Shown here piece after piece: positions 12,458 through 59,715 of a stretch of 64,000 bases of DNA. The stretch spans positions 24,676,001 to 24,740,000 of the forward strand of contig OZ281497.1 in the NCBI GenBank assembly GCA_965637545.1, read 5' to 3'. The DNA comes from Phallusia mammillata (lineage: Eukaryota). The stretch's first letter is position 1. Each line of letters opens with the position of its first letter. The notes under the pieces were generated by a model. It was not told the origin of the DNA. It was given only the letters and a program-made list of their open reading frames with translations, and ran no database searches. The position numbers and the translations under genes were made by a program.

Positions 12458-15400
12458 CTACGATTGTTGAAAAGAACCAGTGAGCGTTGCCACCATAAAT
12501 GGGGCGGTAAATTGGCTCAGGTTTCCCATCTTGCTGGAAGGTTGGGGCTGAACTTCAAGTACATCGTCTGTCACGTTGATTTCATCGTGGTCAGTGGTAC
12601 TAACTCGTGATAGATCCTTAAAAACTAAAATTTGGAAATTAAGTGGATGTTACATTGAGATTGATTGTACTGTTCATATTGTACTTACTTTGTTCTGCCT
12701 TAGGGCGCACAGAAGCATCTCCGTCCCAGCATTTTCTCATGAGGTTTGTGAGGATATTAAAAATCTCCTTGTCATCATCAGCAAGTGTTGTTTCCACATT
12801 TTCGACATACGTCTCATCAGGTCTAACACCTGATGAAATTCGTGCCATCAGGATCTCTTCCGACAGTGTACGGCCGTAAAAAATCGGATTCAATGTCACG
12901 ATTTCATACAAAACCATTCCGAAGCTAAAAAAGGTTACATTTAAAAAAAAAATTGTTATCTCTATCCATATACATGTATTCACACCTGTAAATGTCTGAT
13001 GCTGGGTCAACCGATCCACCTTTGTAAAATTCGGGTGAAACATACAACAACGAATATTGCCTTGTGATGGTCGTGTCTACTGTGCTGGGTTTCATACCTG
13101 AAGCTCTGATGACGTTATTTGCCCCAAAATCGGAAAGTTTAAGGCATAACCTGGTGGTAAGTAGAATATTATCGGGTTTTATATCACCATGACAAAATAT
13201 TTGGCCTGGATTGTAGTTGTGCAGGTATGTAAGAGCCGAGATAAGTTGTCGAGCGAAACGAAGCCTCAACATCCAGCTGACTTTTTTCTCCCTGTGTTTC
13301 TCCAAATAACGTGACAAATTTTCACCACCGATGAATTCCAGTATTATGGCAATCTCGTTATTCCAACTTGTGAAGCCATAAATTTGCACGATGTTTGGAT
13401 GTTGGACTCGAACTAAGGTTTCAGCTTCTCCCTGAACACTGAAATATTATATTTGTTATGTTACTAATGATAAACCACCAATTTTTGTTTTTTCCAGATT
13501 AACCTTGTCTCTACCCATTTGCATTTGAAAGTTAGGAGTTACTGGCAACACGACTTTGTTTTATGTTCAGTGGAATTTGAGTTCATCATTATGACGTCAT
13601 TGTGGTGTGATTACGTCATAGTACACAGGTAGCGCTGTTAATAAAATTTACCTTTACCACACTTCACCTTTTTTTGTGACTGTATATTTGATTTACTTCG
13701 CCAGTCAGAGAAATACATTTTGCAACAACTGTTCCCAAAGATTCGTGGAAACACCGACGAATTGCACCAAATCCTCCACAGCCGATGTAGTCTACTATGT
13801 TAGTGCTAGTTGAAAGCGATACTGCATCGATTTTAGCTAACTTTGATGAAAAGTGGATCTAAAAAAGCACAATTTTGTTACGTAGTTTCAAATACGTTTT
13901 GATATGAAGAACCCTAATCAAGATTTTCGATTTGTTTGGATAGTTTGCTGATCTCAGCTGTAACACTGAAACAGAAAGTTCTTAATGTCCACTTACAAAT
14001 TTGCCGTAAAACACGTATCATCTATTTTATGAAACAACCATCAATAAAAAACAAATTGCAAACTTTCAGGTTCTCATTTCTTCGCTGATATATTTTTAAC
14101 TCGTTGCTGAGGAATTCATCAAGCTGAGAAATGTATTTTCCCACAAGATCTGACCCGTTGCTGTGATCAACAGACAATACGAAAGTTTCCGCTTGCTCCT
14201 TGGCTTTAAAATGAGCGGATTTGATCACTTCCGCGTCCGTGTAACCAGTTCCACATATCTGCAACAACATTCAAGAATGAAAGATAAGTAGAGTCTAGTG
14301 GTTCTCAAAAGGGTGCCACTTGGCTCCCCAGGGGATAAATTTAATTTTCTGGGAGCAAATTCGTTCCAGTAAGGAATTAGGGATGAAAAGTTGTGTATAA
14401 GAAACATTTTCATTACTTTTTAATTAAATTCATAAAATTTGGACAGCCTGCTTCGCCATTCTTACAGCATGTAAGAAGGTCCAGCTGCTGCAGTGACTGC
14501 TGGCATAATAAATCAGGTTTTTCCAACATTTTCTTCTTAGTAGGGATTCGTTGGTACACCGCAAGTCCCGGTGTCGTGGGTTCGAATCCAACCACAGGCC
14601 ACAGTAATGTTTTTGAATCTGGTTTAGTACAACGTACTGTGCTTTTTCATGATTTTGCCTGCGTACCGCACCTTACTGTCTTCCTTGTATTTAACATACC
14701 TCTTCCATTGAGCATCTGTACTGAAGCACGGCACGCATCTTTTTTTCTTCAAGTTGGCCTCTTAGTTCCTCCTGTGACATAGTTTGTTAAAGTAGTCACC
14801 TTTGGTAATTATTTTAAGTCTTGCAGATCTTTTGTCACCTGGCACAATCTAATGCAATTATTTTTATGCAAATAAAACTAATAAAAAACTAATAAATATA
14901 ATAAGCAAATTTACCCGTTTGTGAAGGTTGTTTTCGGTAAATTGCTTCAGCACTGCATCTAAACGACTCTCTAGTTTTTCTTTATACTTTTCCGCTATTT
15001 CTTGTGGATGTTGATTTGTTTGTTGTAAGTATAAATCAACAGCCGTTTTTCGATAACCCTCTTCGATTTCATGTAAATCATTTTCTTCGAAATATTGTCC
15101 ATCGCCTAACTGAAAACATTACAAATGTTTGCATCATTTATTTCCGTGATCGATGAAAGGATAGAAAAATGAGAACATCATCCGTGTGATATATTTCTCC
15201 ACTTTCTTACTGTGCAACTGTACATACTGTACATTAACAGAAAAATTGTCGATGAATTAGACGCTTTATTAATTTAAAGTCCTACAAAATGGCCAATTAA
15301 AATCCAAAACAAAACCAGTTTGGCCAAAAAGCTATTATTTTTTTATCAATCAACTTACGTCGTCACGTCAATCGGTAAAATACCAAACTTAAAGCGAAGG

Positions 15401-17785
15401 AGTAGAAAATACCTACATAAATACCATTAGAAACATACCCACAAGAAATTAGACAGATATGTACAGAGTCAGTAAGATGAATTGATTTCTTATTGTTAAG
15501 TTACCTTACATTAGATTTTAACCAACCTCTCCAAGATTTTGTTTGTATGAACGCTCTGCAGCAAAAATGGATTCCCGCACTTTAAGCTTTACTTGTTCCT
15601 AAAGAGAAACTATACCATTACTCATTTAAAAGTTCGTATTTTCATCAAATCGAAAAACATTATAACTTATATTGAACTATCACCAAACACAAATATACCG
15701 TGCAATAACACAAAAACATAACAAAACCTTTGTAGCCATGTTAATTTTCTTATACTCCTCAAATTCATGGTTTATAATATCTTCCAAGTTTTTTCGATGC
15801 TTTTCAACAAACAAATCGTTGCCAAACTTTGGCATCTGATCAAAGTTAACCAATGTTTTCTTTTTACACACTTCATTGATGTCTAAAATCTCTTTGTCAG
15901 TTTTGTACTTATTTTCACACGCCTGAAACAAAGCGTTTAACTTTAATACTTAGTTTAGGTAGTAAAGGTGCAACTTACCTGATTCATATGTCGGCGATAA
16001 ATATCTCTGCATTTTTGATTAATTTCTAAAATAGCAGCTATCGCCGTTGTCTAAAAACAAGTAAAAATAGTGAGACATCTAAAAAACGGTTCGTTTTTGA
16101 AACAAGACGTCATCGATAAACTGCATGCGCAATGACTGGTAATGATCCCGTTCCATCTAACCTTGTTTAATTTTAGCGCGTATGGGCCATACTTACTTCC
16201 ATAACTGTACCGACTTTGGGCATTTTTCCACTGCAAAATAAATCGACGTATTCAAACGTAAAATTGATGAGATCTTTTCCTGTCACTGGTTTGTTGTTTA
16301 CTTCTTTCACTACAAGATTGTCAGGATGGAAAAGTCGTCGAACAAGAACATCCACCATTTGTTTGAAACAAGTACGTACCCCTAAAAGCCACGTTAATTT
16401 ATGTTTGGGGTGAAAACTGATTTAATTTGGAAGCTCAACAACAAACTCATCACTACTTAGGTAAAAATAGTTTTCTACAAAACCAAAAAGTATTGCAACT
16501 ACCTGCCACATCAAGCTGACTCTGGTTTTCGTACATTCTCCCCAATTTTTCTCCGGGATGAGGCATCAGAAAGCAGGAAACGTTTTTAAAAGAATCACGT
16601 AAATTGTTTCGAACTGATTTAATATCTTTATGATCGTATTGTACTTGGAACACCCTGTCAAGCAGTTCATTCCCTCCATCGAAGCCAAAGGGAACATCAG
16701 GAAAAAGCCAATCTCGGACAAGAAACATTATGTCCTAAAGTAAATTATGTTCATTTTACTACCAATCTACATCCGCACAATCAATTCATATACCTGAAGA
16801 GATCTGTCGTCTTGCTTTAGTATCTTTTGGGCCACTCTTAAGTACTCCGTAAACAGCTGTAAACCGTTCAAAACAGTTAAATGAGGTATGTACAGATTAT
16901 AGTCATTGTACTAACATGCAAATGTTGCAAAGTGTCCTCTTTGATAGTGTTCTGCACGTTGCATATTAGCTTTGAACTTATCAGGGTACTTAGTGCAAAG
17001 ATCACCGAATTATCTTCCACTGAAGATGAGGAATCGAACCAACCTTGAGTGTCCATTAAAAATAATGCCACCTAAGAAACGTTCATCATATATTGTCAAT
17101 TATAACTCTACCTTCAAATCATACTGGTAGATTATTGTGCTCAAACAAACAAAACAAAAATGATTCAACACACCCGTTCGTGTTGACGCGTTTTTACAAA
17201 AAAGGGCTCATCCCATATCCATATTCCGTGTGTGTGGTGCCTCATTCCACCCCTCCATCCAAAACCTCTTAAATCAATTTGTTGTTGTTGTAGCCACGAT
17301 GCTGACTACAATATAAGTGAACGACATCATCACCTCACATATATCTTTCGTTGAAGGTTAGGTATACCTACCGTTTTATTTTGTGCCCACAAAAATCGCA
17401 TCATAAGGTTAAGCATGAATGATTTTCCAGTCCGAAATGGTCCACCAAGAGAGTAAATAGCAACAGGTGTATCAACAACACCTGGATGTTGAAAAATCCT
17501 TTCAAAAGCCGTTTTATCGATACTGTAACGATTTGTGTGATGTGGAAAGATGTGCACTGCCTTATGACCGGTATTGGTGTGACCTTTAAACCACAGTCAA
17601 ATTTTGGATACTTTGAAAACATATTAAACACAGTAAACCGAAAGCAATTGAACTCGAAGCCACTTACCAATATTTGCACTTGTAGATTGAATTCTAAGTT
17701 CCTGGAATCCTTGCTCATTTTGTATCCCTGCTATATCATTCTTTTCCCTGTCAGCAACGTTTTCAGACACTTTGGATTCAGACAT
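12458..17785 (-). CDS. ATL-K1: atlastin/GBP-family GTPase + three tandem three-helix-bundle modules + RIPK-like protein kinase (predicted 981 aa)
   Basis: 17 exons (minus): 17785-17668, 17583-17372, 17305-17174, 17071-16916, 16856-16794, 16734-16503, 16381-16197, 16050-15979, 15922-15728, 15598-15527, 15109-14915, 14771-14700, 14258-14064, 13858-13668, 13438-12986, 12924-12689, 12624-12458. Total 2946 nt, all GT-AG, phase-compatible, no internal stop. GTPase motifs: GPFRTGKS, GWRGGMRHHTHGIWIW, MDTQG, LFTEY, FLVRDW. Kinase motifs: IGCGGFG, VVAK, HGDIKPDN, DFG, YVSPE. Confidence 0.85.
14537..14601 (+). mobile_element. tRNA-derived SINE-like fragment in an ATL-K1 intron
   Basis: Canonical B box GGTTCGAATCC at 14579-14589 with a weak upstream A-box-like segment. 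Absent from the paralogous ATL-K2 intron. No complete cloverleaf. Confidence 0.4.
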
Positions 17786-17817: not shown

Positions 17818-20600
17818 AAGGCCTTCGTATATACGCAAACCCGATAACAAATACAACATTTAGCTGGCAGTTCTGCTTTGCAACATAACGAAACGTAGCT
17901 ACAGTACCTGTTGTTCCTTCTGTTTGCTTAGTTCCGCTTTTACAGCGAAACTTACTGAGGCAGAACGTACAAAGCGGAACGCACTGAAATGGACAGGCAG
18001 ACAAGCGAGTCAACACAAAAGTCTGACAAAAACGCCCCTTATACTGTTGCAATATAACACCTCATTGTTGCAACATAAGCTGCAGTAAAATCCCTGTGTT
18101 GCTTTCAGACTAAGCTTAGCCTAACATGAATAAACCCTTAAGAACCACCTAGCTTTACAGTAACCAGGGAATGTAACAACAAATGTGCCACATCTCCACA
18201 GTGGTTATTTACAAGTTTAAAACAAATGCCTAATATTACAGTAAGATTTAGGTTCACATTATGGATGACACCTTGCCACGTTCATAGAGGGCGACAGTCA
18301 TTTATTTGCCTACCCACGCACCTGTAAACATTTTCCGATGATTAGGTACAAGACCACACATTTTGTCGCGATGACTTGCTTATGGGCAACGATGAACCTT
18401 GGTCCGATACTGGTTTGCAAAACTCACTTATGAAAAGTCGTGGTCTCCTTGCATTTTATATGAAGTAAAACGAGAAAAACTGCAACCATACTGTTCCCTT
18501 TAAAAATCACCAAATTAATACTAATCAGTGAAACCTCATTATAAAATATTCACGACGTGTTTTGCGATACACACGCAACTGTGAGTAAAACGCTGCTTGG
18601 GATCCGTGCCAAAACGTTTCTTTTATTGTAACTGCTCTGAATTGCTTGAACAAAAAAAAAACGATTTGTCGTAAATAGAAAATTTCTGTTTTGAAGCAGA
18701 TAAAGTTATTGAGCAGACAATTGCTTAACTTTTTCACTATTCTGTACATTTTATACCTGGTTGTGTTTACTGAATGTGGAGTCATATCTTCCGTGTCATG
18801 GCTCTTTTGTCTGAATGACAGTTTTACATTATATAAAAACGAATACAGCAATATGGAGATAAAAGTTATCGTGGTAATATGTTGTATATTTTGACCATTC
18901 GTCAGCAGAGTTTAACATAGCGGCTAACTCTTGCCCTACTACAAGATTAATGTCTTTTTGTCATTTTGTTTTGTATTTAATGTCCTTTTTGTCAGTTTTT
19001 GATGAAAAGACAGATAAGTAAGGTATTTCAATAATTTTTTGTTTAAAAAATGTTTGTGGAAATAAAATCTAAGATAAAAGCAATATAATTCCTAGGGATT
19101 CACATTTTATGTCGATTATTCGGCGTTTTTTTCTTTCATCGGTGTGGTTGCAGCACAATATACATTATTTTTGTTATATTATTTTGATGTATTTACACTA
19201 ATCAGCAAACGTTAACAGGGAAAATAACAAAGGTTTGCCAATACATAAAATAAAGCTATTGCAGTTTGAAGTCTTTGTTGGTGATTGTTAACATTCAATT
19301 TTGTGTTCAAAAATTATATAAAAAACATGTAAATTTATTTGCCATATTTTTAAGTTGATAATATGTTTCTTGAAAAGCAAAGTGCGGCTTACATTGAAAA
19401 GGCCTAATGCGAGAAAAAATAAAACAACATACAAGCGAACAATGTTTACGATTTCTAAACGCTACAATTTGAAAATCAGTGACAGTTAAGAGACACAATG
19501 TGTAGGCCACTCGGTGGAAAACGAGAGCAAACAATAAGATAGTTGCACAACTCTACATTAAACGCCCAACAAGATGCAATAACTGTTTACACAAACAAAC
19601 AAACGCAAGTCGACAAGCATACAAGTCATTACAACATGATTTGGATTGGTTTTCTTTGTTCACCACCGGAACAAATTTACCCGAAATTATTTGTACAATT
19701 GTACATGTACACTTTGCCTATAGTTTTACCACATCCATGTACACTTTGCCTATAGTTTTACCACATAATTTGCAAATTAAAAATACAGCACAAAACGGAT
19801 AAAACAAGCGAGCTTACAGCGCAAGAAAAGCAGATAGGAGAAGTCAATGGAACTTTATCGCACCAACAAAAATGCACAAGAGAAACAAAAATAACTTGAT
19901 GATAAGAAACAGGAAGAACAGAACATAAAATAGGCAACGATCAGCTTGCAAAGTAATATTTGCTTAACAAAGAGAAGATTTTGCAGTCTGTAGAGTGTAG
20001 ATAAATACCTTGTACGAGCTGCGTGCACGAAAGCAGGTGATTCCAATATGCACACAAAAAAAACACGGAAAATTGATTGACAAGTTTTTTAACAAAGATT
20101 GAAAATCTATTTTAGTAATAAGTAATGCCTACATAAACATTTAGATAGGTCCCAGTTCCCGAAATTAAACTTTTGTCCCCAGTCTCTACTGCAAGGTAAA
20201 GCATACCACAAGACAGCTCCACATTTAGATAAAAGCGAAAAAAGGGGGTGGGGTAGGGTGAAAAACTAAGTTTTAAAGTTGATTTTAAGTTTTTTAAGTT
20301 ATATCACCTTACTTTAACCCACATTGCCTAAACTGGCAGCATTTTTTGTAATGTCTCGTTTTAACAAATACGTATTGGTGCACTTTGCTTCACTTGTCGG
20401 AATTTAGCTAAATATTGAGGTGACGTGAAATGGTGTTAGTAGATTTTTCCCGGTACATATAGTACAAAAGAAAGTTACAAAAAAAACTTTGTAGAAATGT
20501 CATTTTGGTGTGTCTTCGGAAACGCTTTAAGCTAGCTTCTGTTTTTTTTTACATTTCCGCAAACCGGTAGAAATGTCTGTGGAATACTTGCAATCCACGG
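17818..20600. repeat. Segmental duplication block S, paralogous to about 60645-63960; its right part also matches about 51830-53340
   Basis: Long colinear matches, e.g. acataacgaaacgtagctacagtacctgttgttccttctgtttgcttagtt (17883 and 60718) and atggatgacaccttgccacgttcatagagggcgacagtcatttatttgcc (18261 and 61080). Confidence 0.9.
17908..18330 (-). promoter_or_regulatory. Putative non-coding first exon / promoter of ATL-K1
   Basis: Donor acaacag|GTACTG at 17907 and acceptor ttttgcAG at 17806-17807, 20 nt before the ATG. This part of block S is highly conserved in the copy at 60743-61150. Confidence 0.4.
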
Positions 20601-20929
20601 AGGTACTCTGAAACAAGAAAAACAACCCTTAGCAAAAAAGCAAATGGACAGTCAGTTCCACAGGCTGCGGCTAATTTTAGATCGAATTGTAACATACACA
20701 TTTGCCAAATGCTTTGCTGGTACAAAGTACATGAATCGCAACTTTAAGAACTCAACTCGTACCAATTTAAGACTGGAAGCAGGCTGAATAAGCATGCCTT
20801 TCTTTCAGGGTTTAAAAATATGAAACTTGTGTCAAGCCAACTAGACAAAATAAAGGTACCAGGGCGTAATGAAAAAAACTGGTTATTCATTAACATACTT
20901 GTGTACCAACCTGAATCACATTGCGACCC

Positions 20930-23900
20930 TTACGCTTTTTCAACAGAACTAGTGAGCGTTGCTATAATAAATGGGGCAGTGAATTGACTCAGGTTTCCCA
21001 TCTTGCTTAAATTGGGGGGCAAAGCTTCAGGTACATCGTCAGGCACATTGATTTCGTCGTGATCATCGGTACTAACTTGTGACAACTCATGAGCAACTTT
21101 AAATATAAAATTAAGTAGATGTTACGTTAAGATTGATTGTACTGTTTAATTTACAGTTACTTTGTTCTGCTTTTGGACGCGAAGAAGCATCTCCGTCCCA
21201 ACATTTTCTCATGAGGTTTGTGAGTAAATTGAAAATCTCCTTGTCATCATCAGCAAGAGTTGTTTGAACATTTGTCACATGTTTCACATCGTCGTCCGGT
21301 CTTAGGCCTGATTGAATTCGCAGCATCACCACCAAGGAAGGGCGTTGATTGCCGTGAAAAATCGGATACAATGTCACGATTTCATACAAAACCATTCCGA
21401 AGCTGAAAAAATGTATAAACAACGGGGCTTAATGCAACACCTTGATTGTTTGGAATCATATAGGTTTTGTTTAAATTCTCAATGGTCCTTAGAAACCAAA
21501 TATACAATGACAGCTAACCTGTAGATGTCAGATGATGGGTCAGGTATTCCCTCTTTAAAAAACTCAGGGGAAACGTAAAAAGCTGTATATTCCTTGGTGT
21601 TGCTCGTGTCAACAGTGGTTGTCATTTCAGTAGCTGCTATGACGTTATTTGCCCCAAAATCAGCAAGTTTCACACATAGATTAGTGGTAAGTAAAATGTT
21701 TTCGGGTTTTATATCACAATGACAGAATGTTTCGCCTGGTTTGTAGTTGTGCAAGTATGAAAGAGCTGAGATAAGTTGTCGTGCACATCGAAGTCTCAAC
21801 TTCCAACTCAGCCTTTTTTGCCTGTGTTTCTCCAAGTAGCTTTTTAGATTTCCACCATCTATGTACTCGAGTATTATGGCAACCTCGTTATTCCAACTCG
21901 TAAAGCCATTAATTTGCACAATGTTTAGATGACGGAATCGAACCAACGCTCCAGCTTCCCGCCGAACACTGCAAAGTGTATTAAGTGGTATAAGGATGTT
22001 GAACGTATAATTTTTGACTTTTTACACCGGTCTGTTCATTTGACATTGTCTACATAGATATTTTGGACCATTTTGTCATCTAACCCTTAAACTAAATTTT
22101 TTGATACCAATTAACGTGGAGACAGACTCTTTGAAAACTTCTTTTTCATCATTTTTTGTCCCTTTTTATCATTTTTGTCACTCATTAAATATTTTGCTTG
22201 TACATACCCATTTTTGCGCTTGTCTATTTCTGGACTGCTGCCTTTTAGAGATGTGCACTTTGCAACAACTCTTCCCCAAGATTTGTGGTAGCAACGACGA
22301 ACTGCACCAAATCCTCCACAACCAATGTAGTCTGTCTTGTCAATATTTGTAGCTAGTGACACTGCGTCAACTTCAGTTAACTTGGATGAGAACTGCATCT
22401 GAAACAACGCAAAATATGTAGTTTACGACAGAACAAATTGAGATTAGTTAGTGAAGTGTCGCAGTAGACCATTTCGACAAACAATGTCAACAGTCGATTA
22501 AACATTGTCATTAAAATGTTTAAAATATATTTTTACCTTGGATTGACTCTGTGCTGGTTTTTTAAGGACTTCCACAGATTTAACGACATTGACTTCTTTT
22601 GCAACAGGATGAAAGTGTGGCCTATGGTCTTCTGATGCCCGAGGTTTTGATTGGCTACTGGAGTGAGAGCTCTAAATCAAAAACGTTTTTTAATACAACA
22701 ACAAAACCAAGAAAACCACGGGAAAACTTAAATTAGATGAGCATGTTAAAAAAGGTTAACAAACGTCCAAATTTTCCGTACCGCGGCGTTGAACTCTTTC
22801 GACACGAGATTTCCATCCGAAGTAGAGGGTACTAAAACAGGTATGAAAAAATTTAATGTTTAATGTTTATAACAAACCGGCACAAAAAATAAACATACAC
22901 CGGCATTCCTGAGTTTTTTGTTAACCAAAGATTAAGGATGGATTTTAGCAGTAAATTTTAAATAAACATACAACATTGTTTTCCAGCAGGATTTACGATT
23001 TGGTGTGTTTTAGTTACAAATAGACTTTACTGATATAACAAATCACAAAACGCGTATTTGCAACGATTTTAATTTTTAGACTAACCATCTTTATCCAGCA
23101 TTTTGAACTCATCTTCATTTCCAGTCATTTTATCCTCGTCTTGTCCTTGAGGAAATATCTGAATAACAACAAAATTAACATCATTTTAATGCTAATTTGT
23201 AGGACAATATCCTATCACTATTTTCCATACATTTTCTTCTTTTATGGTTACTAGGTTGCATATTACCTTCAGGCTACAAAAATAAATTTAAAACAACTAG
23301 TCCAAATAGTTTAAAATACCCATAAACTTGGGGTGAACTTGCAATTGATAGACGTGTCTAACACCACAAACCTGTCGCCTTGCTCGGTAAGCTTGCTGGG
23401 TATGCCGCTGATCAACGAAAGGAAGTGATGAGTTGAGCATATTTACTAGAGATGAAGCAGATGTAATAAGTTCCGGATCATTGGCTTCATGAATCAGACC
23501 ACACACTCGCTTGATATTCTCCGCATATAAGTTAAACTCAGATGTAATGGGTTCCAATAACCAAAGTTTCTTAAGTGACCAATCTTCCCCGGAGCTTTTA
23601 GAGACCAAGTTTTCAAGTCTACGAAAAACAAAAGAATCGCACATACCAAAAGCAAACTTGGATACAAGTTTCCATCGGTCCTCGGTTAAATGTTTCTGCT
23701 GCTTTCGAAATTCGTTCAAGGGCAAGACCATCATCATGTAGAAAGCGCCAACTCGCATTCTTGGCCCTGTAGATGATCTGTTGTTACATATTGGCTACAA
23801 GTGAAAGCAAGAATTCGAGTAAGTGAAACAGACTGAATATCTCCATCGTAATTCATCAGGCAGTTGAGTGTCAATATGAAATTGACAGGAACATAACAGT

Positions 23901-42970: not shown

Positions 42971-42999
42971 TATTGCTCATCAAGCAGTTTTATTGAAAA

Positions 43000-47637: not shown

Positions 47638-47745
47638 TTTACCCTGATGAAGGCGACCTGTATAGGACGTCGAAACGTCGGAATAGAAATACTTGCCATA
47701 AGAGCTCAATTAACTTGATATTATGCCTGGCAGCAATAAGCTTAT
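47638..47745 (+). ncRNA. Solo Penelope-like pLTR with an intact-core hammerhead motif
   Basis: CTGATGA (47644-47650) ... GAAAC-GTC (47672-47679). Downstream atgcctggcagcaataag is shared with 44344-44361. Confidence 0.55.
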
Positions 47746-49089
47746 ATAAGAAACTTACGGTCAAGTGGTCGAAACCCAGTGGTCAGTTATCACCGCCCTA
47801 ACGGCTTGTAGTCGGTTACCATTGAAATAAATTGTAGCTGGAATGCTGCTAAAGGCAAAGATGGTGAAACAATGCTCACAAGATGTTTGAATTGCTTTTG
47901 ACAGCTTGTTTTCATCAGTTTCAAACAATTTATGGAAACAAATAACTTAAACAAAACTAACCGGGCAGTAGGCTAAACTTCTAGCACAAAATAAAAAACT
48001 CGGTTAACATGAAGTTACGAAAACGCAACGCATAACCCCAATGTTTGAGTTGGAATCCACAATCGCAAAAATATTTTTGGAAAACTATTACGCAAACAAG
48101 CGTTTTTATGATTGTTGGTTGTAGTTATATGAAGCAATTTAGTTCGAGTTTTCTGTGTGGTTTGTGTGAGCTGATATCAATAGCAAACACAAATTAGGCA
48201 TATTTGTGCGAGTACGTTAATCGTTTGGCGTGCCATGAATCACCTCGAGTGCCAATCTTGGCACGCGTGCCGAGCTCTGGGCTAAGGTTTCGCTTGCCAA
48301 AACATTTTGTTGAAAATTCGTCACTTAATGACGTTTAACATAGTTTATGATACAATATTTAGCAGATTATGTTGTCTAACAAGTACTATCTTCCAATGCA
48401 AAACGTCATGCATATCCACCCGAAGAAAGCAGGCACCAAGGTAACGGTTAGATAGGGTTAGAAAGTTAGTTTCGAGGTTGAGAATTAGTTTTTGAGGATT
48501 CTTTTTCGCCTGAATCAAATAAAACTCACCAAAAAGAGTCAGCTTAGAAATAGGTAAAGTTCTGGACCATCATATTCCAGAAGGATGTGTTATTACTACA
48601 TATGTTTTGGTAAAGAAAAGAGAATGGGCGAAATATTTTTTACCAGTAAAAAGCAACAATTTGACTCAACAAGGCTGTTGGACACAAAAGGGCAAAACAT
48701 TGCTGTATACAGCAATTATATAAAAAAAGCAATTATATATAATTCGGATTTTTTTAATAAGCTGATAATTGGACAGAGGAAAACTTAGACCGACAAGTGT
48801 CGGTAGTGTGTGCAAGGGTACCTTCTTAATTTGGATCTTCACTTTCACCAGAAAATCTAGAGTATTTCGATTTATAAGAAATTGTAATCATTTATGGTTT
48901 TTGTCTTCAAATGATTAAAATTTGTTATTACCTAATAAAACTTTTTGATACTGCTGCAGAAGTACGAATGGTGATACGTCAGCGGGTGCATTAAGTCAAT
49001 GAATAAGTTTGACAATAGGCACACATTATCTTTTGCCCGGAAACAATTATACCTGCGTGATTTAAATGACCAATTAATTGCGTGTAGGT

Positions 49090-49310
49090 CAGCTGTGGGC
49101 AACCTTCGTCACTGTGGGGCCAAATACAATTGCAATAACTAGATCGCGGGCAGCACCTTTGTATGACACAAGGTGATTTTATTTCGTTGCATAATAAAAA
49201 TGCCTTACTACAAGTAAACTCGCATTTGATTCTCGCAGCATATTGTGTCTCTGCGGGCCGCACAACCTTTAATCAAGAGCCGCATGTGGCCCGCAGGTTG
49301 CCCACCCCTG
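49090..49310. mobile_element. hAT MITE (221 bp)
   Basis: TIRs CAGCTGTGGGCAAC / GTTGCCCACCCCTG and a perfect 8-bp TSD GTGTAGGT. The flanks are homologous to the empty site at about 38610-38720. Confidence 0.88.
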
Positions 49311-49458
49311 GTGTAGGTAGACCCCTGACGAGGCACATAATTCTGCCGTGGTTTGTGATAGCAGTTCGGGTCCGCTTTTTTGCGGACGACCTGCTCCAAC
49401 ATACATTACGTTGTATTGCTTAACTGTTGACCATTTATAATCATAAGAAATAAAGTTA

Positions 49459-51050
49459 GGGGAGAGCGGGTTAAAATGAGGTGGTGGGGTAAAATGAAGT
49501 TGACCTTTTTTAGACGACCTACTTACGCCACCGTGCGCCGAATCTGTGTTTAGGCGGCCATTTTGAGTATCAATCTTGTCGAGGAAAGATTTTGGTTTCG
49601 GCGGTTCTTTAAAAAGTTTGGAGCAAAAAAATTAAAAATAGCCTGTTTCTTAATATAAGTGACATAAGTTTGATTCTTTTTTTCCCAAGACATATACAGT
49701 TTAGAAATAAAAAGTCTTTATTTTAGATTGGTTAGTGCTGAGACAAAATAATTGGTGATGAATCAAAAAGTTTTCCAGTTATTGTTATTTTTTGTGAAAG
49801 CTTTTTCTGTTCAGTACAGGCGGGGGGCAAAATGAAGTACCCCACTGTGGTATTGCAATACAACTAACCCATATTTATTGACTTTGCTATCACAATGGCA
49901 CGCAATCTAGTATTTTTATTGGTATAGCATAGCTGGCTAGCTGTTAAACAGTTGAGAAACAGAAAATTGGTTTAGGATTTGGAAATTATATAATTGTTTA
50001 TTTAAATGTTAGCTATTGAAGTTTGTATTTTTATTAGACACCCAGCATGGCAAGGATATATAAGAGAAAAATTCATAGGCAAAACTGGTCCAAGGAAGCC
50101 ATGCAATCAGCAGTATTAGAGGTAACAAACAAACGTTTGAGCTACAGAGAGGCATCAGATAGTTTCCATATCCCAGAAAGTACACTTGAAAGAAGGGTGT
50201 CATGGTTCCGAAAAAGCCAGACATTAAATACAGCATGCAGGAAAGGTATGGCTGTAACAGATCATGATATTTAGATCTAGACATACTGTCCCAGATTTTT
50301 CAGTATAGTAGCTGCATTTACCTATTAATGTTTGGTTACTTTTCACTGTCACTGTGCTTTTTAAATGTTACCAATACTAAAATTTTGCAGAACTTGGAAG
50401 ATACAGACTAATTTTTTCTGTTTCACAAGAAAAGCAATTGTTTAAATATGTCAAAATTTTGGAAGCATCACTGTTTGGTCTTACTCCAAAAGAACTTCGT
50501 GGACTAGCATTTCAAGTTGCTAAAAGAAACAACATGGAGAACAAATTTAATCAAAACACTGGCTTAGCCGGCAAAGATTGGCTTCGAGGATTTTAAAGTA
50601 TAAAAAGGCTGCAAACAATGTGAAACTTAATCAGAAAGAAGATGCAGTCTGCTTGTTTTGTGAGTTATATTCCACTTCTACAGAATGATGGATTTGTTGC
50701 TGTATCTGTCATAGGTGGGCACATTACTCGTCGGCTGGAGTTGATGAGTGTGAAAGCTGTATTCGCTATATTTGCGATTTATGCCACTGATTAGGCCTGT
50801 TACTGAAGAAAAGTGTTCATTGGTTGTATTCGTTGTTCTTCGCAACTATTTTCTTTATAAATGCAAAAAAAACAATTTGTTGCTATTTTGTGCATTTTGT
50901 TCTTATTCATTTTAGTGCAGTATGACAAAATCTCATTTTACCCCACCTATGGGGCAAAATGGGAAAAAACGGACCCTTGGGAAATTTAAAATAACTTGTT
51001 GTTTGTAAAGTAAGGCTTGACTATTGGGGGGTGGTTTCTGTAGTAGATAG
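49459..51050 (+). mobile_element. Internally deleted pogo/Tigger-like DNA transposon (HTH_psq + CENP-B-type HTH + PHD relic, no DDE domain)
   Basis: TA precedes GGGGAGAGCGGG. Exon 50047-50245 encodes MARIYKRK..WSKEAM..IPESTLERR. After an intron, 50391-50596 encodes LGRY..GLTPKELRGLAF..AGKDWLRGF*. This jumps to a C-x2-C..WAH..C-x2-C relic at about 50640-50782. Subterminal ggggcaaaatg motifs are present; the right terminus is not resolved. Confidence 0.8.
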
Positions 51051-53666
51051 ATTAAACTACCTGCCATGTAAGTTTGGGTTCAATATTCCCAGTGTTAACG
51101 AAGCTACGACGGTTTCCGCTAAAGTGTCCCATTATACCCATGTTTTTATACATTGCTTGCAAACAGACGATATTATTTAATTTAGCTCGATTGTTTGCAG
51201 AAAATTCTACCCGGCGGTGGACAACTTCATTTCGTCAAATAAACCGATATATTAGCAACCATTTGTTGGTTTTAATAACGCAACGGTATTATACGACAAA
51301 ACAATTAACAGTAGCAAAAATTACTGCAAAAAAGTAAAAATGTGAAAGTTTATCCTAAACGGCAAAGCATTACAGAACTCCTGCTTTTAACGTTTGACAG
51401 AAAGATATAGAAATATGCCAGGTATGAAATGAGGATGCTGCATTTTTACGGTTTTCCAACAAAGTCGGCAACATCATTTTGGCGAGTGTATCTACACATA
51501 AACGTTCATTTGATTTGTGCGATTGTTGACGTCCAATTTTGTGTTTGATATTTTATTCGACTGTAGGGGTTTAGAGAAACAAACATTGCGATTAAGGCTC
51601 AAGACTATTTGTGATACTTAGATAATGTAGTATAATACTGATGGCAAAATCTTGTTTAAATTCGGCGTACACTGCAAGATACAAATTAAACAAAAAAATA
51701 CAAATTGTAAGAGCAATACCTATGACGTCAAAAGACTGTAGTTAAAAAAATTAATACAATTTTACCGAACTAGAGAGTAAATCATCTGGAATAGTGCACA
51801 AATCTCAACAATAAGCAAGTGCGTTCACTGCTTACACAAACAAACAAACGTAAGTTGACACGCCTACACATGATGTAGATTTTTATTCCTGGTTTACTAT
51901 GTAAAAAAAATATGCGAAATGATTTCTACAGTTTTACAGTTTTGCGCATAGTTAAATCACATTCTCTACTTTGCAAATGAAACACCCAACACAAAACGTA
52001 TATAACAAGCAAGCTTACTCCGCAACACAAATATATTTACTGGGAAATGTGCATAGACTTGAACCACTCATAATCGATTTTTTATAATAGTTAACGCCTA
52101 ATATTTGTGTTCGAATATTTGAGAAACGTAGAAAACGTAATAGCGAAGAAACCAGAACAATAATAGAACAATGCCTACGATATACAATGGATACAATTTG
52201 AAAATCAGTGACAGTATTGGGACACAAGGTGGCCGCTTGGTAGAACTCGAGAGCCAATCAACAATATAGTTCCCCCATTTCTACACCAAGCGCCCGAAAA
52301 CATGCGATAACTATTTACACAAACAAAGGCAAGTCGATACACGTACAAGTCATAACAATATGATTAAAATTGTCATTTCTTGTTTACCATGGGAACTAAT
52401 TTACCCGAAATTATTTGTACAATTTTACATTTACATTTTACCTATAGTTAAATCACATCCCCTACTTTGCAAATTAAAAATACAACACAAAACGGATGAA
52501 ACAAGCGAGCTTACAGCGTAGGAAAAGCAGATAGGAGAAGTCAAGACGTTGACGTTTTCCTTATATATATTAATGGAACTTTATCGCACCAACAATAAAT
52601 GCACAAGAGAAACAAAAATAAACTCGATGACAAAAACAGGAAGAACAGAACATAAAATAGGCAACAATAAACTTGCAAAGTAATATTTGCTTAATAATGC
52701 CATTTACAGTGATTAAGAGAACATTTTGCAGCCTGTAGAGTGTAGATAAATACCTTGTACGAGCTGCGTGCACGAAAGCAGGCGATTTCAATATGTACAC
52801 AACAAAACGCCGGGAAACTGATTGAGATGTTATTTAACACTGATAAAAAACTTATTTTAGTCATAAGCATTGGCTGTATAAACATTTAGATAGATCCCAG
52901 TTCCCGAAATTAAACTTTTGTCCCCAGTCTCTACTGCAAGGTAAAGCATACCACAAGACAGCTCCACATTTAGATAAAGCGGAAAAAGGGGGGTGGGGTA
53001 GGGTGAAAAACTAAGTTTTAAAGTTAGTTTTAAATTTTGTTATATCACCTTACTTTAACCCACATTGTCTAAACTGGCAGAATTTTTTGTAATGTCTCGT
53101 TTTAACAAATACGTATTGGTGCACTTTGCTTCACTTGTCGGAATTTAGCTAAATATTGAGGTGACGTGAAATGGTGTTAGTAGATTTTTCCCGGTACATA
53201 TAGTACAAAAGAAAGTTACAAAAAAACTTTGTAGAAATGTCATTTAGGTGTGTCTTCGGAAACGCTTTAAGCTAGCTTCTGTTTCTTTTTACATTTCCAC
53301 AAACCGGTAGAAATGTCTGTGGAATACTTCCACGGAGGTACACTGAAACAAAAAAAAACAACCCTTAGCAAAAAAAGCAAATGGACAGTCAGTTCCACAG
53401 GCTGAGGCTAATTTTAGATCGAATTGTAACACACACATTTGTCAAATGCTTTGCTGGCACAAAGTACACGAATCGCAACAATAAGAACTCAACTCGTACC
53501 AATTTAAGACTGGAAGCAGGCTGAATAAGCATGCCTTTCTTTCAGGGTTCAAAAATATGAAACTTGTGTCAAGCCAACTAGACAAAATAAAGGTACCAGG
53601 GCGTAATGAAAAAAACTGGTTATTCATTAACATACTTGTTTACCAACCTGAATCACATTGCGACCC

Positions 53667-56600
53667 TTACGCTTTTTCAACAGAACTAGTGAGCGTTGCT
53701 ATAATAAATGGGGCAGTGAATTGACTCAGGTTTCCCATCTTGCTTAAATTGGGGGGCAAAGCTTCAGGTACATCGTCAGGCACATTGATTTCGTCGTGAT
53801 CATCGGTACTAACTTGTGACAACTCATGAGCAACTTTAAATATAAAATTAGGTAGATGTTACGTTAAGATTGATTGTACTGTTTAATTTACAGTTACTTT
53901 GTTCTGCTTTTGGACGAGAAGAAGCATCTCCGTCCCAACATTTTCTCATGAGGTTTGTGAGTAAATTGAAAATCTCCTTGTCGTCATCAGCAAGAGTTGT
54001 TTGAACATTTGTCACATGTTTCACATCGTCGTCCGGTCTTAGGCCTGATTGAATACGCAGCATCACCACCAACGGAGGTCGTTGATTGCCGTGAAAAATC
54101 GGATACAATGTCACGATTTCATACAAAACCATTCCGAAGCTGAAAAAATGTATAAGCAACGGGTTTAATGCAACACCATGATTGGTTGGAATACAGGTTT
54201 TGTTTAAATTCTACCCAAATATACAATGACAGCTAACCTGTAGATGTCCGATGCTGGGTCAGGTATTCCCTCTTTAAAAAACTCAGGGGAAACGTAAAAA
54301 GCTGTATATTCCTTGGTGTTGCTCGTGTCAACAGTGGTTGTCATTTCAGTAGCTGCTATGACGTTATTTGCTCCAAAATCAGCAAGTTTCACACATAGAT
54401 TAGTAGTAAGTAAGATGTTTTCAGGTTTAATATCACAATGACAAAATGTTTCGCCTGGTTTGTAGTTGTGCAAGTATGAAAGAGCAGAGATAAGTTGTCG
54501 AGCGAACCGAAGTCTCAACTTCCAACGCAGGTTTTTTTGCCTGTGTTCCTCCAAGTAGCTTTTTAGATTTCCACCACCGATGAATTCCAGTATTATGGCA
54601 ACCTCGTTATTCCAACTAGTAAAGCCATAAATTTGCACGATGTTTGGATGACGAAATCGAACCAACGCTCCAGCTTCCCGCCGAACACTGCAAAGTGTAT
54701 TTAGTGGTATAAGGATGTTGAACGTAAATTTTTTGACTTTGTACACTGGTCTGTTCATTTGACATTGTCTACGCAGACATTTTGGACCATTTTGTCACCT
54801 AACCCTTAAATTAATGTTTTGATACCAATTTACCTTGAGACAGACTGTTGGAAAACTTGATTTTTATTATTTTTTGTTATTTTTGATAATCAAAACCACT
54901 AATCAAATATTTTGCTTATACACACCCATTTTTGCGCTTGTCCATTTCTGGACCGATGCCTTTCAGAGATATGCACTTTGCAACAACTCTTCCCCAAGAT
55001 TTATGGTAGCAACGACGAACTGCGCCAAATCCTCCGCAACCAATGTAGTCTGTCTTGTCAATATTTGTAGCTAGTGACACTGCATCAACTTCAGTTAACT
55101 TGGAGGAGAACTGCATCTGAAACAACGCAAAATATGTCGTTTACGACAGAACAAAGTGAGATTAGTTAGTGAAGTGTCGCAGTAGACCAGCGGATCTCAA
55201 TGTGGGGTCCGCGGAACTTTAAGGGTCCGTGAGGCAATTTTGGGGGAACCGCGAAGTTGAAGTAATGCGATATTATTATTTGGCGTCAGTTTGTGTCACT
55301 AAAGAAGTTTAAATCAAAGTTGAATTGAGAATTGACTGCCTCCATTGCTAGACAATAGCCTTTATTGAATGACAACTATCAAAAACGCAATTGTTCACAA
55401 TCGTAATGCTTCTTGTTTTGTCTGTGATGTTACAAGCTGTCTTTGGATGATTATTATGCGCCCTTTTGCATAACTAGCTAAAATCAACTTTCGTTTCTAT
55501 GAAATACACATTTAGGCTTAGGACCGCGACCCCTCAAAACAATGGCAAAAAAACGTTTTGAAAAAAATATGAAAAAGTTTGATAACCACTGCAGTAGACC
55601 ATTTCGACAAACAATGTCAATAGTCAATTCAACACTACCATTAAAATGTTTAGAATATATTTTTACCTTGGATTGACTCTGTGCTGTTTTTTTAAGGATT
55701 TCCGCAGATTTAACGACAATGTGTTCTTCAGGATTAGAGTGTGGCCTATGGTCTTCTGGTGCCCGAGATTTTGGTTGGCTACTAGAGTGAGAGCTCTAAA
55801 CCAACGACGTTTTTTAACACAACGATAAAATAACCAAACCACAGAAAAAATAAATTAATTTAGCATGTCAAAAAATTTTTACATTTTCCGTACTGTAATC
55901 AAATTAAAACAATTAGTTTAAAATACGACTTAAACTTGATGTGAAATTGATATGTCTAATAGCACAAACCTCTCCCCTGGCTGGGTGAGCTTCCAGGGCA
56001 TGCCTCTGATCAAAGGAAGGAAGTGATGAGTTGAGCATTTTTAATAAAGATGAAGCAGATGTAATGAGTTCCGGATCATTGGCTTCATTAATCCAATTAC
56101 ACACTCGCCTGATATTTTCCGCATATAAGTTCAACTCAGATGTAATGGGTTCCAATAACCAAAGTTTTTTAAGTGACCAATCTTTCGCGGAGCTTGTTGA
56201 GACCAAGGTTTCAAGTGTATCAAAAACACCAGAACCGCACATACCAAAAGCAAACTTGGATACCAGTTCCCATTTGTCCTCGGTTAGTTGTCTCCGTAGC
56301 CTTTGAAAGTCATCCAAGGGCATAATCATCATCATGTAGAAGGCGGCAAAAAACTCCTGCCAGGTGAGATGAGAAAAGTATCTTACTTTGTGTCCGTCTA
56401 ATATCGTCAGCTTCATATTCACTTGCTTTGTTACTGGTATGTTTAGGAATGCATTTATCGTTGAAGATTTAATCCCAGCTTTTTCAAAGTCCCTGTCTTT
56501 TAAAACAAATTTTCCGTTGAGAAAAGCATCCCAAGCCATTTTTGCCAGTTTCTCCATATCACATTCTTGACTCTTCGGATGATCTGTTGTTAGATATTGG

Positions 56601-59600
56601 CTAAAAGCAAAAGCTAGAACTCGTGTGAGTGAAACAAACTGAATATCTCCATCGTAATTCATCAGGTAGTTGAGTGTCAATATGAAATTGACAGGAACAT
56701 AACAGTATGCAAATACATTGGGGTGTTGGATAAGTTTTTGGTGTATAACCTCGTAGTTGTTTCCACATATCTGACGTCCAAGTTCATCCTGTGATGTTGG
56801 AGTTAAACCAAGTATCTGGACTATAAACTTGGGTCGGTATGAAGGATGGAGCTTGTGCAGTTGAGATGGTCGTGATGTGAAAATCTTTCGAGCACGTGGA
56901 AGCAAGTTTCCTCCCGCTAAATGCTTCAAGTAACATTCTGCAGTATTTTTTTCATGTAACAGTGGTTTCGAAATCAAACTTGAAAATGATTTGAATGCTG
57001 CCTCATCCAAACCGTCGCAAATGATCAAAACGTGAGGATCACTGCAAATGGCAGAGAGTATAACGGTTGCCTCGTCACGTGTGCAGTTCCAGTCTGATAA
57101 CATGGTGGAAACCAAAAACTGAAGAAGCGTCACCTTATCCATGAAGTCAAGGTGCCTGATCGCAATGTAAAAGACAAATGATACTCTTCCACATAACTGT
57201 CCACGTATAGCTTGTAGGGCCCACTTTTTGGAAATAGTGGATTTTCCTATTCCAGCTTGTCCAATAACGCCTAAGACATTTCCATGTTTTTCGATGTAGT
57301 TTTGCTTAGCTTCTTTTTCAACTGTTCTAAATATTTTCGAAGCCTCGTGTTGTGCCATCAGTTGTGCAACATTAAACATTTGTTCACCGGTAAAGTCACT
57401 TGGTGGTTCATAGACCTCCTTTATGCGGCGGTAGTGTCCTTCTGCTTGAAAATCGTCTTCAATTTGTTGTGGTTTGCTGACCATGGCAACGGGGACGGGT
57501 TCTATAGCTCGGTCTACAATTTTAGATAGTGACGATTCATCATCAGCGATGGCTTCAACTTTTTTGGTGAGTAGAAACTGTAGTTGCTCATCTAAAAGAG
57601 GAAAATTAATAGTTTGACAAATAATTTTTCGTCATCATGGTGCTACAATGCGGTGAGCTGTGTTCCTTTGTAGTGCATTGCGGTAGCATGTGTCGTCTGC
57701 TTTCTTACGAACGTGAGTGACACTACTTTCGCGTTTTAATAAGTGGGTTTTCTTAAATATTGCAACTACTGACGGTTGCAAACATAGGGGTAAACCTGTT
57801 AACTAGCAATTAAAACCTATGAATAATCCTATTATGTGTGTGTTTTAATGATCTTTTTTTGTTTCGTTTCCGGTGGACTACGTCACGTAAACATTTTAAA
57901 ATTTTCTCAAACGACTTAACTCAAAAGTCAGACAAAGATAGTCCTCACATATTTCATTTTCAATGGCTTGTGTTGTTTGCTGATGCAGACTTGCTGAAGA
58001 CTGGGTTACTGTAGATGGGCTCTTTGCTCTCCCAGGTTGTGCTACCGGAGGAGGAGGACTTTCTGATTCCGTCCATAGGTTATGGTCTGTATGTGGTTGC
58101 TTTGCATTGCACCCTGGTCCACTTGTGTTGGTGGTTGTGTCACCAAGCTGTACCACTTGTGCTTCCCCCTAAAATAAATTTATTATCGGTTATAGATGAT
58201 TACACTGGTCAACACAATTTTTGGTGTCTTTAATGTTAAAACTGATATTGACTAATTTTGGGGTGCTGATTTCAAAAATCATTACGGTTTTCTTCAACCA
58301 GATCAACTTTTTAAGTTATTTACAAAATCAAAATTTATGACCATATTGATTCAATGACTTTAAAATCATGCTTTTATGTGTTTGTTAAAGTTTTGTTACA
58401 TTATACACATCAATTTCCTACAGTGCAGTCAGTTTTATAGCATATGCGTTCTATGCTTATGCTCTGTCTAAAAATGGTTGGTGCAGGCTAGCGGTAACTT
58501 TGAACTATACATGTTTTATGGAATGATTTTCAGTCTAGTAAAGCAAGGTGGTAAAACTAAAATTAATAGTGGCTAGGTCATCTATAAGGTGTTGCATGAA
58601 TTACCAAGATGTTTTATGCTACATTTCTGGTGTAAACCCATACAACACAACTAAAAAGAAAAAAAGGTCTGTATCAAATGTGCATATCTTGCACACTTCG
58701 ATGAGGTCTTAGGGGTTTAGGACAAGCAATTGGCTCCACTTACCTAATGTTGACTGGAATATTGCAGTACTGGACAAAAACAGCAAAAAGGGACTGAAAT
58801 TATTAGAAAGAGTACATAACTAAGTTATTGAGCGGTCTGAAAAATTCGGTAACAAAATGAGTATAAAGCTACACTTCCCTCTTGAAACGTAGGTGATAAA
58901 ATTGATCAGAATTAAGCTGAAAGGTTTCATCAGGATATTAGTAAAACAAAATGTGTCAGGGAAGAAGGAATAATGTGGTCCTGGCTAACTGCTGTTGGTC
59001 AATTAAACGGGACGATATTGCTGCCACTCAGTTCCGAAAGTTACCAAAGTACATGTGTAGGGGTATACCTGATAACTTACACATTTGAAACATTTTTTTG
59101 TTTTTTTGTGTTGAATTTTGTTTCTTAGGAGTGTCCACCTGTTACATTTAAAATTAAATTCGAAATTTTGTTCTTGCAATAACGTTAATTCTAAATAAAT
59201 ACTCAAAACCAGTTTTACTTTTGTGTATAACTTACATATAGATTGTTTTTCAAATGTGGATGTACCATAACACAAAAACTAGACGTGATACAGATAAACT
59301 GGTTGCATTTTTGAAATCAGAGCACTAGAATTAGTCAAAATCAGTTAAAACATTCCAGACACTAGTAAAAAAATATTTTTTTTTTGTTGCCCAGTGTAAC
59401 CATTGGAAATAAAAGTATAATAGATCTTTTCGAATTTCTTACAATTTTTGTAACATTGCTTTCGGGATGAGCTGGAATTAAGTGGGCTGGAACTGTATCC
59501 GATTCTCGGGATACACCAAGTGGAGATGAAATGTCAACCGAACCTTAAAATATACAACTTGCGTCAAGAAAATCGTAAAGTTATAGGATGCTTTGTAAAT

Positions 59601-59715
59601 TACCCGCTTTGTTGGTTTGACTGGTTTGGGGAACATCATCATTCAAGACTTGAGATAAGTTTTGTTGAGGTAACGTATCGCCCAATGCGGGCGTATTAAG
59701 CCCGTGTTGAGCCAT
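53667..59715 (-). CDS. NLR-K2: N-terminal low-complexity region with a RHIM-like motif + NACHT (no LRR) + RIPK-like kinase (predicted 1077 aa)
   Basis: 9 exons (minus): 59715-59604, 59543-59443, 58168-57949, 57591-55970, 55795-55667, 55116-54926, 54687-54238, 54139-53898, 53833-53667. Total 3234 nt, GT-AG, phase-compatible, no stop. NACHT motifs: GQAGIGKS, LIICDGLDE, IFTSRP, YVPVNF, FSHLTWQEFFAA. Kinase motifs: IGCGGFG, VVAK, HCDIKPEN, DFG, YVSPE. Confidence 0.85.
55168..55591. mobile_element. hAT-Charlie-type MITE in an NLR-K2 intron
   Basis: TIRs CAGCGGATCTCAA / TTGATAACCACTG and a perfect 8-bp TSD CAGTAGAC. The empty site is in NLR-K1 at about 22460. Confidence 0.9.
58203..59396. mobile_element. 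Non-autonomous TIR element (1194 bp) flanked by TA, in NLR-K2 intron 2
   Basis: Ends TA-CACTGGTCAACA ... TGTTGCCCAGTG-TA, with about 100 bp of imperfect inverted subterminal sequence. The paralogous NLR-K1 intron is only 71 nt. Confidence 0.8.

Follow-up and report, generated by a model that had tools for sequence, protein, structure and literature searches.

In ROCO kinases (LRRK2 and the Dictyostelium Roco proteins), a dimerising GTPase and a kinase of the TKL group are present in one chain, and the state of the GTPase is thought to control the kinase. Atlastin G domains dimerise upon GTP binding and NACHT modules oligomerise upon nucleotide exchange; in the vertebrate NOD1/NOD2-RIPK2 and RIPK1/RIPK3 systems, NLR oligomerisation gathers TKL kinases, which are recruited by CARD or RHIM adaptors. 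Plant NLRs with integrated kinases and fungal NLRs with a Pkinase end domain combine a STAND NTPase and a kinase in one protein; the genes for them originate from local fusions within rapidly evolving clusters (PMC4986451; PMC5819176). Ascidians, finally, possess a family of proteins that begin with a kinase and continue into Kelch, TPR, TIR plus Roc or Z-alpha domains, to which Phallusia A0A6F9DQ76 (P0207), at least 17 Clavelina lepadiformis paralogues and Ciona LOC144746229 belong. Here we describe a 64-kb stretch of AT-rich eukaryotic DNA from Phallusia mammillata (contig OZ281497.1; this whole stretch is called the window below), in which one four-exon kinase unit lies behind two genes with atlastin-type GTPase exons (ATL-K1 and ATL-K2) and two genes with a NACHT exon (NLR-K1 and NLR-K2). 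It is a lineage-specific gene cluster in an ascidian. On balance we lean towards reading it as a kinase unit placed behind four genes, with an obligate fusion at the GTPase genes and a likely but unproven one at the NACHT genes.

The cluster shares features with each of these systems. As in ROCO kinases, a GTPase would be joined to a TKL-group kinase, but the ROCO GTPase is a Ras-like Roc-COR module and not an atlastin of the dynamin superfamily, the homology lies in the kinase fold only and the origin is independent. The NACHT genes resemble the plant and fungal NLR-kinases in that a STAND NTPase and a kinase are predicted in one protein; the plant proteins, however, have NB-ARC and keep their leucine-rich repeats (LRRs) and the fungal ones carry the kinase N-terminally, whereas here an animal NACHT module is followed by a candidate C-terminal kinase, without repeats. 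Unlike in the vertebrate NOD and RIPK systems, the kinase would be covalently attached, and no CARD, death domain or Pfam-detectable RHIM is present. The window kinases agree with the ascidian N-terminal-kinase family in being non-RD kinases (HGD or HCD), in collinearity from residue 1 to an FxxPF motif and in the limits of the second kinase exon; unlike in that family, the partner here lies upstream of the kinase. NLR-kinase combinations are thus already known in plants and fungi, and it is the upstream atlastin or NACHT partner that is new for this kinase family.

In a self-alignment over about 1.5 kb, the kinase unit was found in four copies, all on the minus strand, and no further copy or fragment of it is present elsewhere in the 64-kb window. 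Its exons K1 to K4 measure 191, 450 or 453, 236 or 242 and 167 or 158 nt, with phases 0/2/2/1, which confirms to the base what a preliminary description of this DNA had listed for the four minus-strand genes. The copies are the following.

13858-13668, 13438-12986, 12924-12689 and 12624-12458, minus strand: kinase unit of ATL-K1, with ATC and not ATG as first codon
33743-33553, 33338-32886, 32826-32591 and 32527-32370, minus strand: kinase unit of ATL-K2, with ATC as first codon
22398-22208, 21968-21519, 21402-21161 and 21096-20930, minus strand: kinase unit of NLR-K1, intact, with ATG as first codon
55116-54926, 54687-54238, 54139-53898 and 53833-53667, minus strand: kinase unit of NLR-K2, in which K1 starts at AG|ATG

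Rebuilt from the sequence, the four units have open frames of 345-349 codons. The Pkinase model of Pfam matches all four K2 exons (E 1e-25 to 1e-29), and the ATL-K1 copy shows the motifs GCGGFG, VVAK, HGDIKPDN, DFG and SPE; catalytic motifs are complete in the kinase as well as in the GTPase (GxxRxGKS, DTQG, RD) and in the NACHT module (Walker A and B). The unit contains no RHIM, death domain or CARD and stops about 10 residues past the kinase tail motif. Pfam recognises GTPase domains upstream of two copies and NACHT upstream of the other two. The earlier proposal that one kinase module is common to two unrelated NTPase gene types holds.

The preliminary description had brought in RIP kinases, but PDB matches do not place the module specifically among them: the kinase is equidistant from TAK1, RIPK2, RIPK1, IRAK1/4, JAK and plant receptor-like kinases (E 1e-12 to 1e-19), and a TKL-group, non-RD (HGD/HCD) kinase is the safe description that its sequence suggests. 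Its nearest single-domain relatives are the Phallusia mammillata protein P0207, whose name "RIPK1-like" is an automatic label, several Clavelina lepadiformis proteins and one Ciona protein, and in all of them the kinase is N-terminal. In a phylogenetic tree, the four window kinases form one clade (support 100/98) that is split by gene type and has Phallusia P0207 as its sister, in keeping with the monophyly that had been anticipated. Residues 2-340 of the 349 match residues 1-342 of Clavelina P0242, and comparable alignments were obtained with Phallusia P0207, Ciona P0241 and further proteins; the alignments start at kinase residue 2-12 and residue 1-13 of the relatives and end at the common FxxPF motif, which lies about 10 residues before the stop in the window kinases and beyond which the relatives continue into other domains. 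At a distant locus (L001), an acceptor likewise immediately precedes the first kinase exon, which opens with ATG, and unrelated database fragments show K2 exons with the same boundaries. Because it is collinear with its relatives from residue 1 and starts at AG|ATG at the NACHT loci, the kinase unit is the whole coding region, from ATG to stop (about 349 codons), of a short member of an expanded ascidian TKL family, and its acquisition is best described as the capture of a downstream gene rather than a shuffling of internal exons. The claim that the cassette moved as a unit therefore stands in so far as introns and the beginning of the 3' flank were copied along with the exons at the DNA level, and falls in so far as it implied internal-exon shuffling, the whole ATG-to-stop region being involved.

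Just past the stop, at a distance of 16-20 nt, a donor-like ATTCAG|GTTGG is kept in all four units. It may be a vestige of the junction to lost C-terminal exons, as the relatives run into further domains at this point.

12440-12458, 20912-20930, 32352-32370 and 53649-53667, minus strand: donor-like ATTCAG|GTTGG sites

The GTPase genes and the intron that joins sensor and kinase in the first of them are as follows.

12458-17785, minus strand: ATL-K1, a predicted gene of 17 exons and 981 aa with its start ATG at 17785
32370-37482, minus strand: ATL-K2, with GTPase and repeat exons at 37482-34165 and the kinase unit at 33743-32370
13859-14063, minus strand: junction intron of ATL-K1, 205 nt, with donor AAA|GTTTGC in phase 0 and acceptor TTTTTTAG|ATC

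The ATL-K1 model has GT-AG at every intron and one uninterrupted frame of 981 codons, which runs from the GTPase exons (17785-16197) through three 72+195-nt helical exon pairs (16050-14064) into the kinase unit (13858-12458). All its GTPase and repeat exons are matched by intact ATL-K2 exons in an exon-by-exon tblastn, except for the first, the start exon, which was not located. Pfam places the GBP-type GTPase domain PF02263, a model that covers atlastins as well as GBPs, at 16456-16734 and 36367-36648. In the PDB, only atlastins match the ATL-K1 GTPase exons at E < 1e-9: E values range from 1e-10 to 1e-15 for ATL1, ATL3 and the Drosophila protein, and GBP2 reaches 2e-3. The G domain shares with atlastins, its best PDB matches being ATL1/ATL3, the P-loop arginine, DTQG and RD motifs (GPFRTGKS, DTQG and VRDW in ATL-K1; GRSRTGKS, DTQG and IRDF in ATL-K2). 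By these matches the predicted GTPase is of atlastin type and not, as had been proposed, of GBP type, and knowledge on pathogen sensing by GBPs therefore does not carry over directly; descent from atlastin rather than from GBPs sets a limit on any immune reading of these genes.

As in GBPs, the ATL-K GTPase is soluble: no transmembrane segment was found in ATL-K1, where the highest 19-residue Kyte-Doolittle mean is 1.35 and lies inside the G domain, and the two transmembrane helices and C-terminal amphipathic helix of atlastin are missing, the ATL-K1 repeats leading directly into the kinase. Unlike atlastins and GBPs, the GTPase genes have no membrane hairpin, no GBP C-terminal helical domain (no Pfam match to GBP_C) and no CaaX box, and they possess the three tandem helical exon pairs and the kinase instead. 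As to a three-helix-bundle middle domain like that of atlastins, none of the three 195-nt repeat exons, which follow the G domain, gave a credible Pfam match, and R3b, the sole repeat exon run against the PDB, matched no atlastin chain.

Several observations indicate that at the GTPase genes the kinase is translated together with the upstream frame. In both ATL-K1 and ATL-K2, the ATG at the start of K1, which the relatives keep, has become ATC; the K1 exons hold no in-frame Met, and TAG stands directly upstream. The two junction introns have no alternative first exon in common, that of ATL-K1 is also without a poly(A) signal, and the donor after 14064 is positioned as in the functioning donors of the two preceding repeat exons. 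Between the two kinases the ratio of non-synonymous to synonymous divergence (dN/dS) is 0.28. As ATC is found in both and purifying selection was kept, the ATL kinases would have been translated since the loss of the start codon, and this loss, combined with the constraint, implies that they are read as a fusion with the upstream GTPase frame. The atlastin-kinase fusion is thus probably real, and the codon change and selection strongly imply an obligate fusion, with GTPase, helical repeats and kinase in the predicted product.

The NACHT genes were modelled as listed below.

53667-59715, minus strand: NLR-K2, a predicted model of nine exons and 1077 aa
59715-59604 (E1), 59543-59443 (E2), 58168-57949 (E3), 57591-55970 (NACHT), 55795-55667 (linker) and 55116-53667 (K1-K4), minus strand: exons of NLR-K2
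55667-55795, minus strand: linker exon of NLR-K2, 129 nt or 43 codons, phase 0-0, rich in Ser, Pro, His and Lys
20930-25715, minus strand: NLR-K1, with the NACHT exon at about 24830-23374, the linker at about 22677-22543 and the kinase unit at 22398-20930

The NLR-K2 model has GT-AG at every intron and a frame that is open across 1077 codons, and its NACHT exon of 1622 nt ends at 55970 (GAG|GTTTGT, phase 0). Pfam detects NACHT at 55916-57631 and 23737-24867 (PF05729, E 5e-18), and the NLR-K2 copy bears the motifs GQAGIGKST and LIICDGLDE as well as weak matches to NOD2_WH and NLRC4_HD2 that lie under their cut-offs. In NLR-K1, the NACHT exon has lost about 210 nt in the winged-helix/helical region, and its frame shifts near 23752 and reaches a stop. 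With the C-terminal parts of seven ascidian NLRs as queries, tblastn over the whole window found no match to an LRR or other C-terminal sensor beyond the NACHT exon, and NLR-K1 and NLR-K2 differ in this from annotated Clavelina NACHT relatives, which carry LRRs. The view of these genes as pathogen sensors needs correction in that they carry neither LRRs nor any other sensor domain that could be recognised. An N-terminal death-fold domain gave no Pfam match in exon 3, the sole N-terminal exon scanned.

That N-terminal exon (58168-57949 and 25293-25069, minus strand) contains a RHIM-like tetrad, VQLG, which falls within a single exon of the NACHT gene model. The surrounding stretch reads VVQLGDTTTNTSGP in NLR-K2 and APQFGDTITHTTGP in NLR-K1, next to APQIGDTNIHTTGP in Phallusia COS1.5 (P0001); the RHIM model of Pfam did not match the tetrad-bearing exon.

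According to the overall reading, the position of K1 directly after an acceptor (AG|ATG) would allow a transcript from any upstream gene with a phase-0 donor to splice on in frame, and at the NACHT genes the same join would be made via the 43-codon linker exon, which is the only possible join between the NACHT exon and K1. Nucleotide-driven dimerisation of the GTPase or oligomerisation of NACHT would then bring the kinases together and lead to trans-autophosphorylation. The anatomy, the intact frames, the selective constraint, the monophyly of the kinases and their mosaic ages are established, and it is from these that we infer the transcript structure, the activation mechanism and any immune role of these genes; that they encode immune receptors is put forward here as a hypothesis. 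Should the modelled transcripts exist, this ascidian would make two types of single-chain protein, each with a nucleotide-driven, self-associating module wired to a TKL kinase, and we found neither type described for animals. They would offer a natural test of induced-proximity kinase activation without adaptors, a second, independent GTPase-kinase design beside ROCO/LRRK2 and an origin route for tunicate immune-type receptors through an acceptor before a start codon, read-through and gene conversion.

For the NACHT genes, the join has to be weighed against the alternative that fusions occur at the GTPase genes only and that the kinase at the NACHT loci forms a gene of its own, or a downstream cistron, whose translation begins at the K1 ATG. 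K1 would in that case be reached by a spliced leader or by a non-coding first exon, possibly the linker exon, and the NACHT gene would end at a stop 18-25 codons past the proposed donor. We regard this as the less probable arrangement, though one to be taken seriously. The splice sites proposed for both gene types in the preliminary description (14064/13858 and 55970/55795/55116) are indeed canonical, phase-compatible GT/AG sites. A good acceptor precedes the linker exon and a strong donor, AAG|GTAAAA, follows it ahead of the K1 acceptor; NLR-K1 and NLR-K2 both keep the linker frame open and differ there by a 6-nt indel, and no poly(A) signal is found in NLR-K2 from the NACHT stop to the linker exon. 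In Ciona, an acceptor with an upstream donor is cis-spliced and not trans-spliced to the spliced leader (PMC1488885), so that a paired acceptor such as this one would preferentially be cis-spliced, and the spacing of 800-1000 nt differs from that of Ciona operons, which are without intercistronic DNA.

A number of observations weigh against fusion and some of them speak directly for a separate kinase. The kinases at both NACHT loci keep their own ATG (TTTCAG|ATG), AG|ATG is likewise found at L001, and the unit forms an entire open frame that aligns with stand-alone relatives from the first residue on. Substitutions in the linker look neutral (1 synonymous versus 12 non-synonymous), without sign of coding constraint, and the recently homogenised block begins 73 nt upstream of K1, which leaves the linker exon outside. 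On the NLR-K1 lineage, the kinase has undergone 8 synonymous and 6 non-synonymous changes (about p=0.005 against neutrality), and this constraint in spite of the broken NACHT frame fits a kinase that is expressed on its own. At the exit from the sensor exons the donors are weak (GTTTGT or GTTTGC), and an AATAAA is present in the junction intron of ATL-K2. A related NACHT locus of another ascidian-like host (L005) shows no kinase in the 10 kb that follow it. Of the NLR-K2 locus, the possible RNA runs match only a repeat insertion in the E2-E3 intron (58190-59420). Finally, among 1.84 billion protein representatives compared with the K2 exon, none was at least 50% identical to the kinase, and these genes therefore have no product, annotated or derived from transcripts, on record. 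Taken over both gene types, the claim of single-chain sensor-kinases made in the preliminary description is accordingly well supported for the GTPase genes, by the ATC codon and the constraint, and no more than plausible for the NACHT loci, where the ATG is retained and NLR-K1 is frameshifted; a single NLR-K2 chain through the linker exon would be a matter of even chances.

The history of the cluster can be followed in its synonymous divergence (dS) and in the edges of homology.

dS between ATL-K1 and ATL-K2: 1.10 for the GTPase, 0.75 for the helical repeats and 0.19 for the kinase
dS between NLR-K1 and NLR-K2: 0.33 for NACHT and 0.13 for the kinase
dS between the kinases of the GTPase and NACHT types: 0.6-0.65
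19846-22471, minus strand: NLR block that shares 93% identity with 52572-55189 and spans the kinase unit together with 73 nt ahead of K1 and about 1.08 kb behind the stop

The kinases thus differ less between the two gene types than the two GTPase parts do from each other. Within types, identity steps 73-86 nt upstream of K1, and the high-identity block includes introns; in a self-comparison of the window, the NLR block is 92.75% identical as compared to 82-86% further upstream, with a step at its 5' edge. Between types, homology extends over the exons, the 64-nt intron 3 (75-79%) and about 60 nt past the stop (70-77%), and intron 1 is without homology (about 40%). Upstream of K1, 30 nt are 55-57% identical, mostly the pyrimidine tract and AG, so of the span reported in the preliminary description the part past the stop codon is secure and the 30 nt inside the preceding intron are marginal. 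Together these divergences show a kinase unit that evolves in concert and whose copies are younger than the sensor parts attached to them, and the mosaic of dS values speaks for gene conversion, or a renewed exchange, that was confined to the kinase unit. One duplication of two genes as a unit was ruled out, as dS differs five-fold within the same gene pair.

These data also bear on a broader and more speculative idea, namely that the kinase unit is a promoter-less plug-in cistron that could be expressed behind any gene, its copies being kept interchangeable by gene conversion, and that ascidians in this way rebuild adaptor-free NTPase-kinase receptors. An unpaired acceptor would lead to spliced-leader trans-splicing and a separate kinase protein, and an upstream phase-0 donor that pairs with the acceptor would give a covalent sensor-kinase, which would make the locus an animal counterpart of the plant NLR integrated-domain loci. 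We consider this possible but rather improbable. It is still more doubtful that the kinase is a bait or integrated decoy, which mimics a host kinase targeted by pathogens and whose modification triggers the NTPase module. Among plant NLRs, kinases are one of the common kinds of integrated domain (PMC5819176), the NACHT genes are without an LRR or other sensor domain, so that another part must sense, and the kinase family is large and has many partner domains in ascidians; however, all catalytic motifs are kept, a kinase dN/dS of 0.14-0.35 fits an active enzyme (although decoys can be active too), and neither architecture has an effector domain as output. That the cluster is non-functional segmental-duplication debris, made of chimeric unexpressed pieces, is very improbable, for although NLR-K1 is frameshifted, transposons have inserted in introns and left fragments between genes and protein databases hold no product on record, ATL-K1 and NLR-K2 retain 17 and nine exons, with canonical sites at every splice junction and a frame that stays open over 981 and 1077 codons, all the ATL-K2 exons that tblastn detected, which are all but the first, are intact at dS values that reach 1.1, and a dN/dS of 0.14-0.45 in every domain means that the genes are not debris.

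That both architectures are undescribed, as had been supposed, is supported by the database and literature searches. Neither was found among database relatives, within the length windows and the best 150 matches used: NACHT-based searches for relatives of 315-1001 aa and of 383-1218 aa gave no Pkinase partner, and in a K2-exon search of all representatives the best 150 contained no NACHT or atlastin and consisted mostly of multi-kinase proteins. A family search with Clavelina P0242 gave Kelch, TPR, TIR plus Roc and Z-alpha as the only partners, without GBP/atlastin or NACHT. In the related-host loci L001-L005, the kinase has no sensor ahead of it and NACHT is not followed by a kinase, and a metagenome scan with the K2 exons yielded almost only bacterial kinases, the sole relevant locus (L006) being without an upstream sensor. 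No atlastin/GBP-kinase or NACHT protein with a C-terminal kinase was found in the literature searched, animal NLR surveys included. In Clavelina lepadiformis P0317 and P0316, the annotation places a Z-alpha domain, which binds Z-DNA, or TIR plus Roc/Ras domains behind the kinase, and these are further sensor-like partners of the kinase module.

Four sequencing runs were compared with the NLR-K2 locus. It is carried by two DNA runs of one independent study (X1 and X2), whose contigs confirm the NACHT-exon end, the linker exon and the K1 sequence. No splice joint was found across the four runs, which gave repeat matches and one indel polymorphism only, and the possible RNA runs share almost none of the sampled words with the locus. 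In the K1-K2 intron of NLR-K2 (54820-54905), 84 nt are replaced by 32 other letters in both DNA runs, a difference that is an indel polymorphism or a paralogue. Over the NACHT core (56267-57066), the summed contig depth of the two DNA runs, which is not a copy number, reaches 60-170x the local baseline and could come from many near-identical NACHT copies in the genome. Two introns of NLR-K2 hold repeat insertions, which the DNA contigs mark as high-copy.

55190-55590, minus strand: repeat insertion in the linker-K1 intron of NLR-K2, not in NLR-K1; depth very high in bins 55067-55666
58190-59420, minus strand: repeat insertion in the E2-E3 intron of NLR-K2, not in NLR-K1; very high contig depth

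A 1.1-kb element is found directly upstream of ATL-K1 (17837-18944) and of NLR-K2 (60668-61722) in copies that are 79-86% identical, and may represent either a repeat or a 5' flank common to both genes. At the left edge of the window (2-5524, plus strand), a single uninterrupted reading frame of 1841 codons extends beyond the first base; its product is rich in Thr, Ser and Pro, internally repetitive and mucin-like, and has no Pfam match. Between ATL-K2 and NLR-K2, the region 39000-51000 consists of transposon debris with inverted or direct repeats, in which two fragments could be recognised.

43830-44405: weak reverse-transcriptase frame
50038-50271: psq-type helix-turn-helix of a pogo-like transposase

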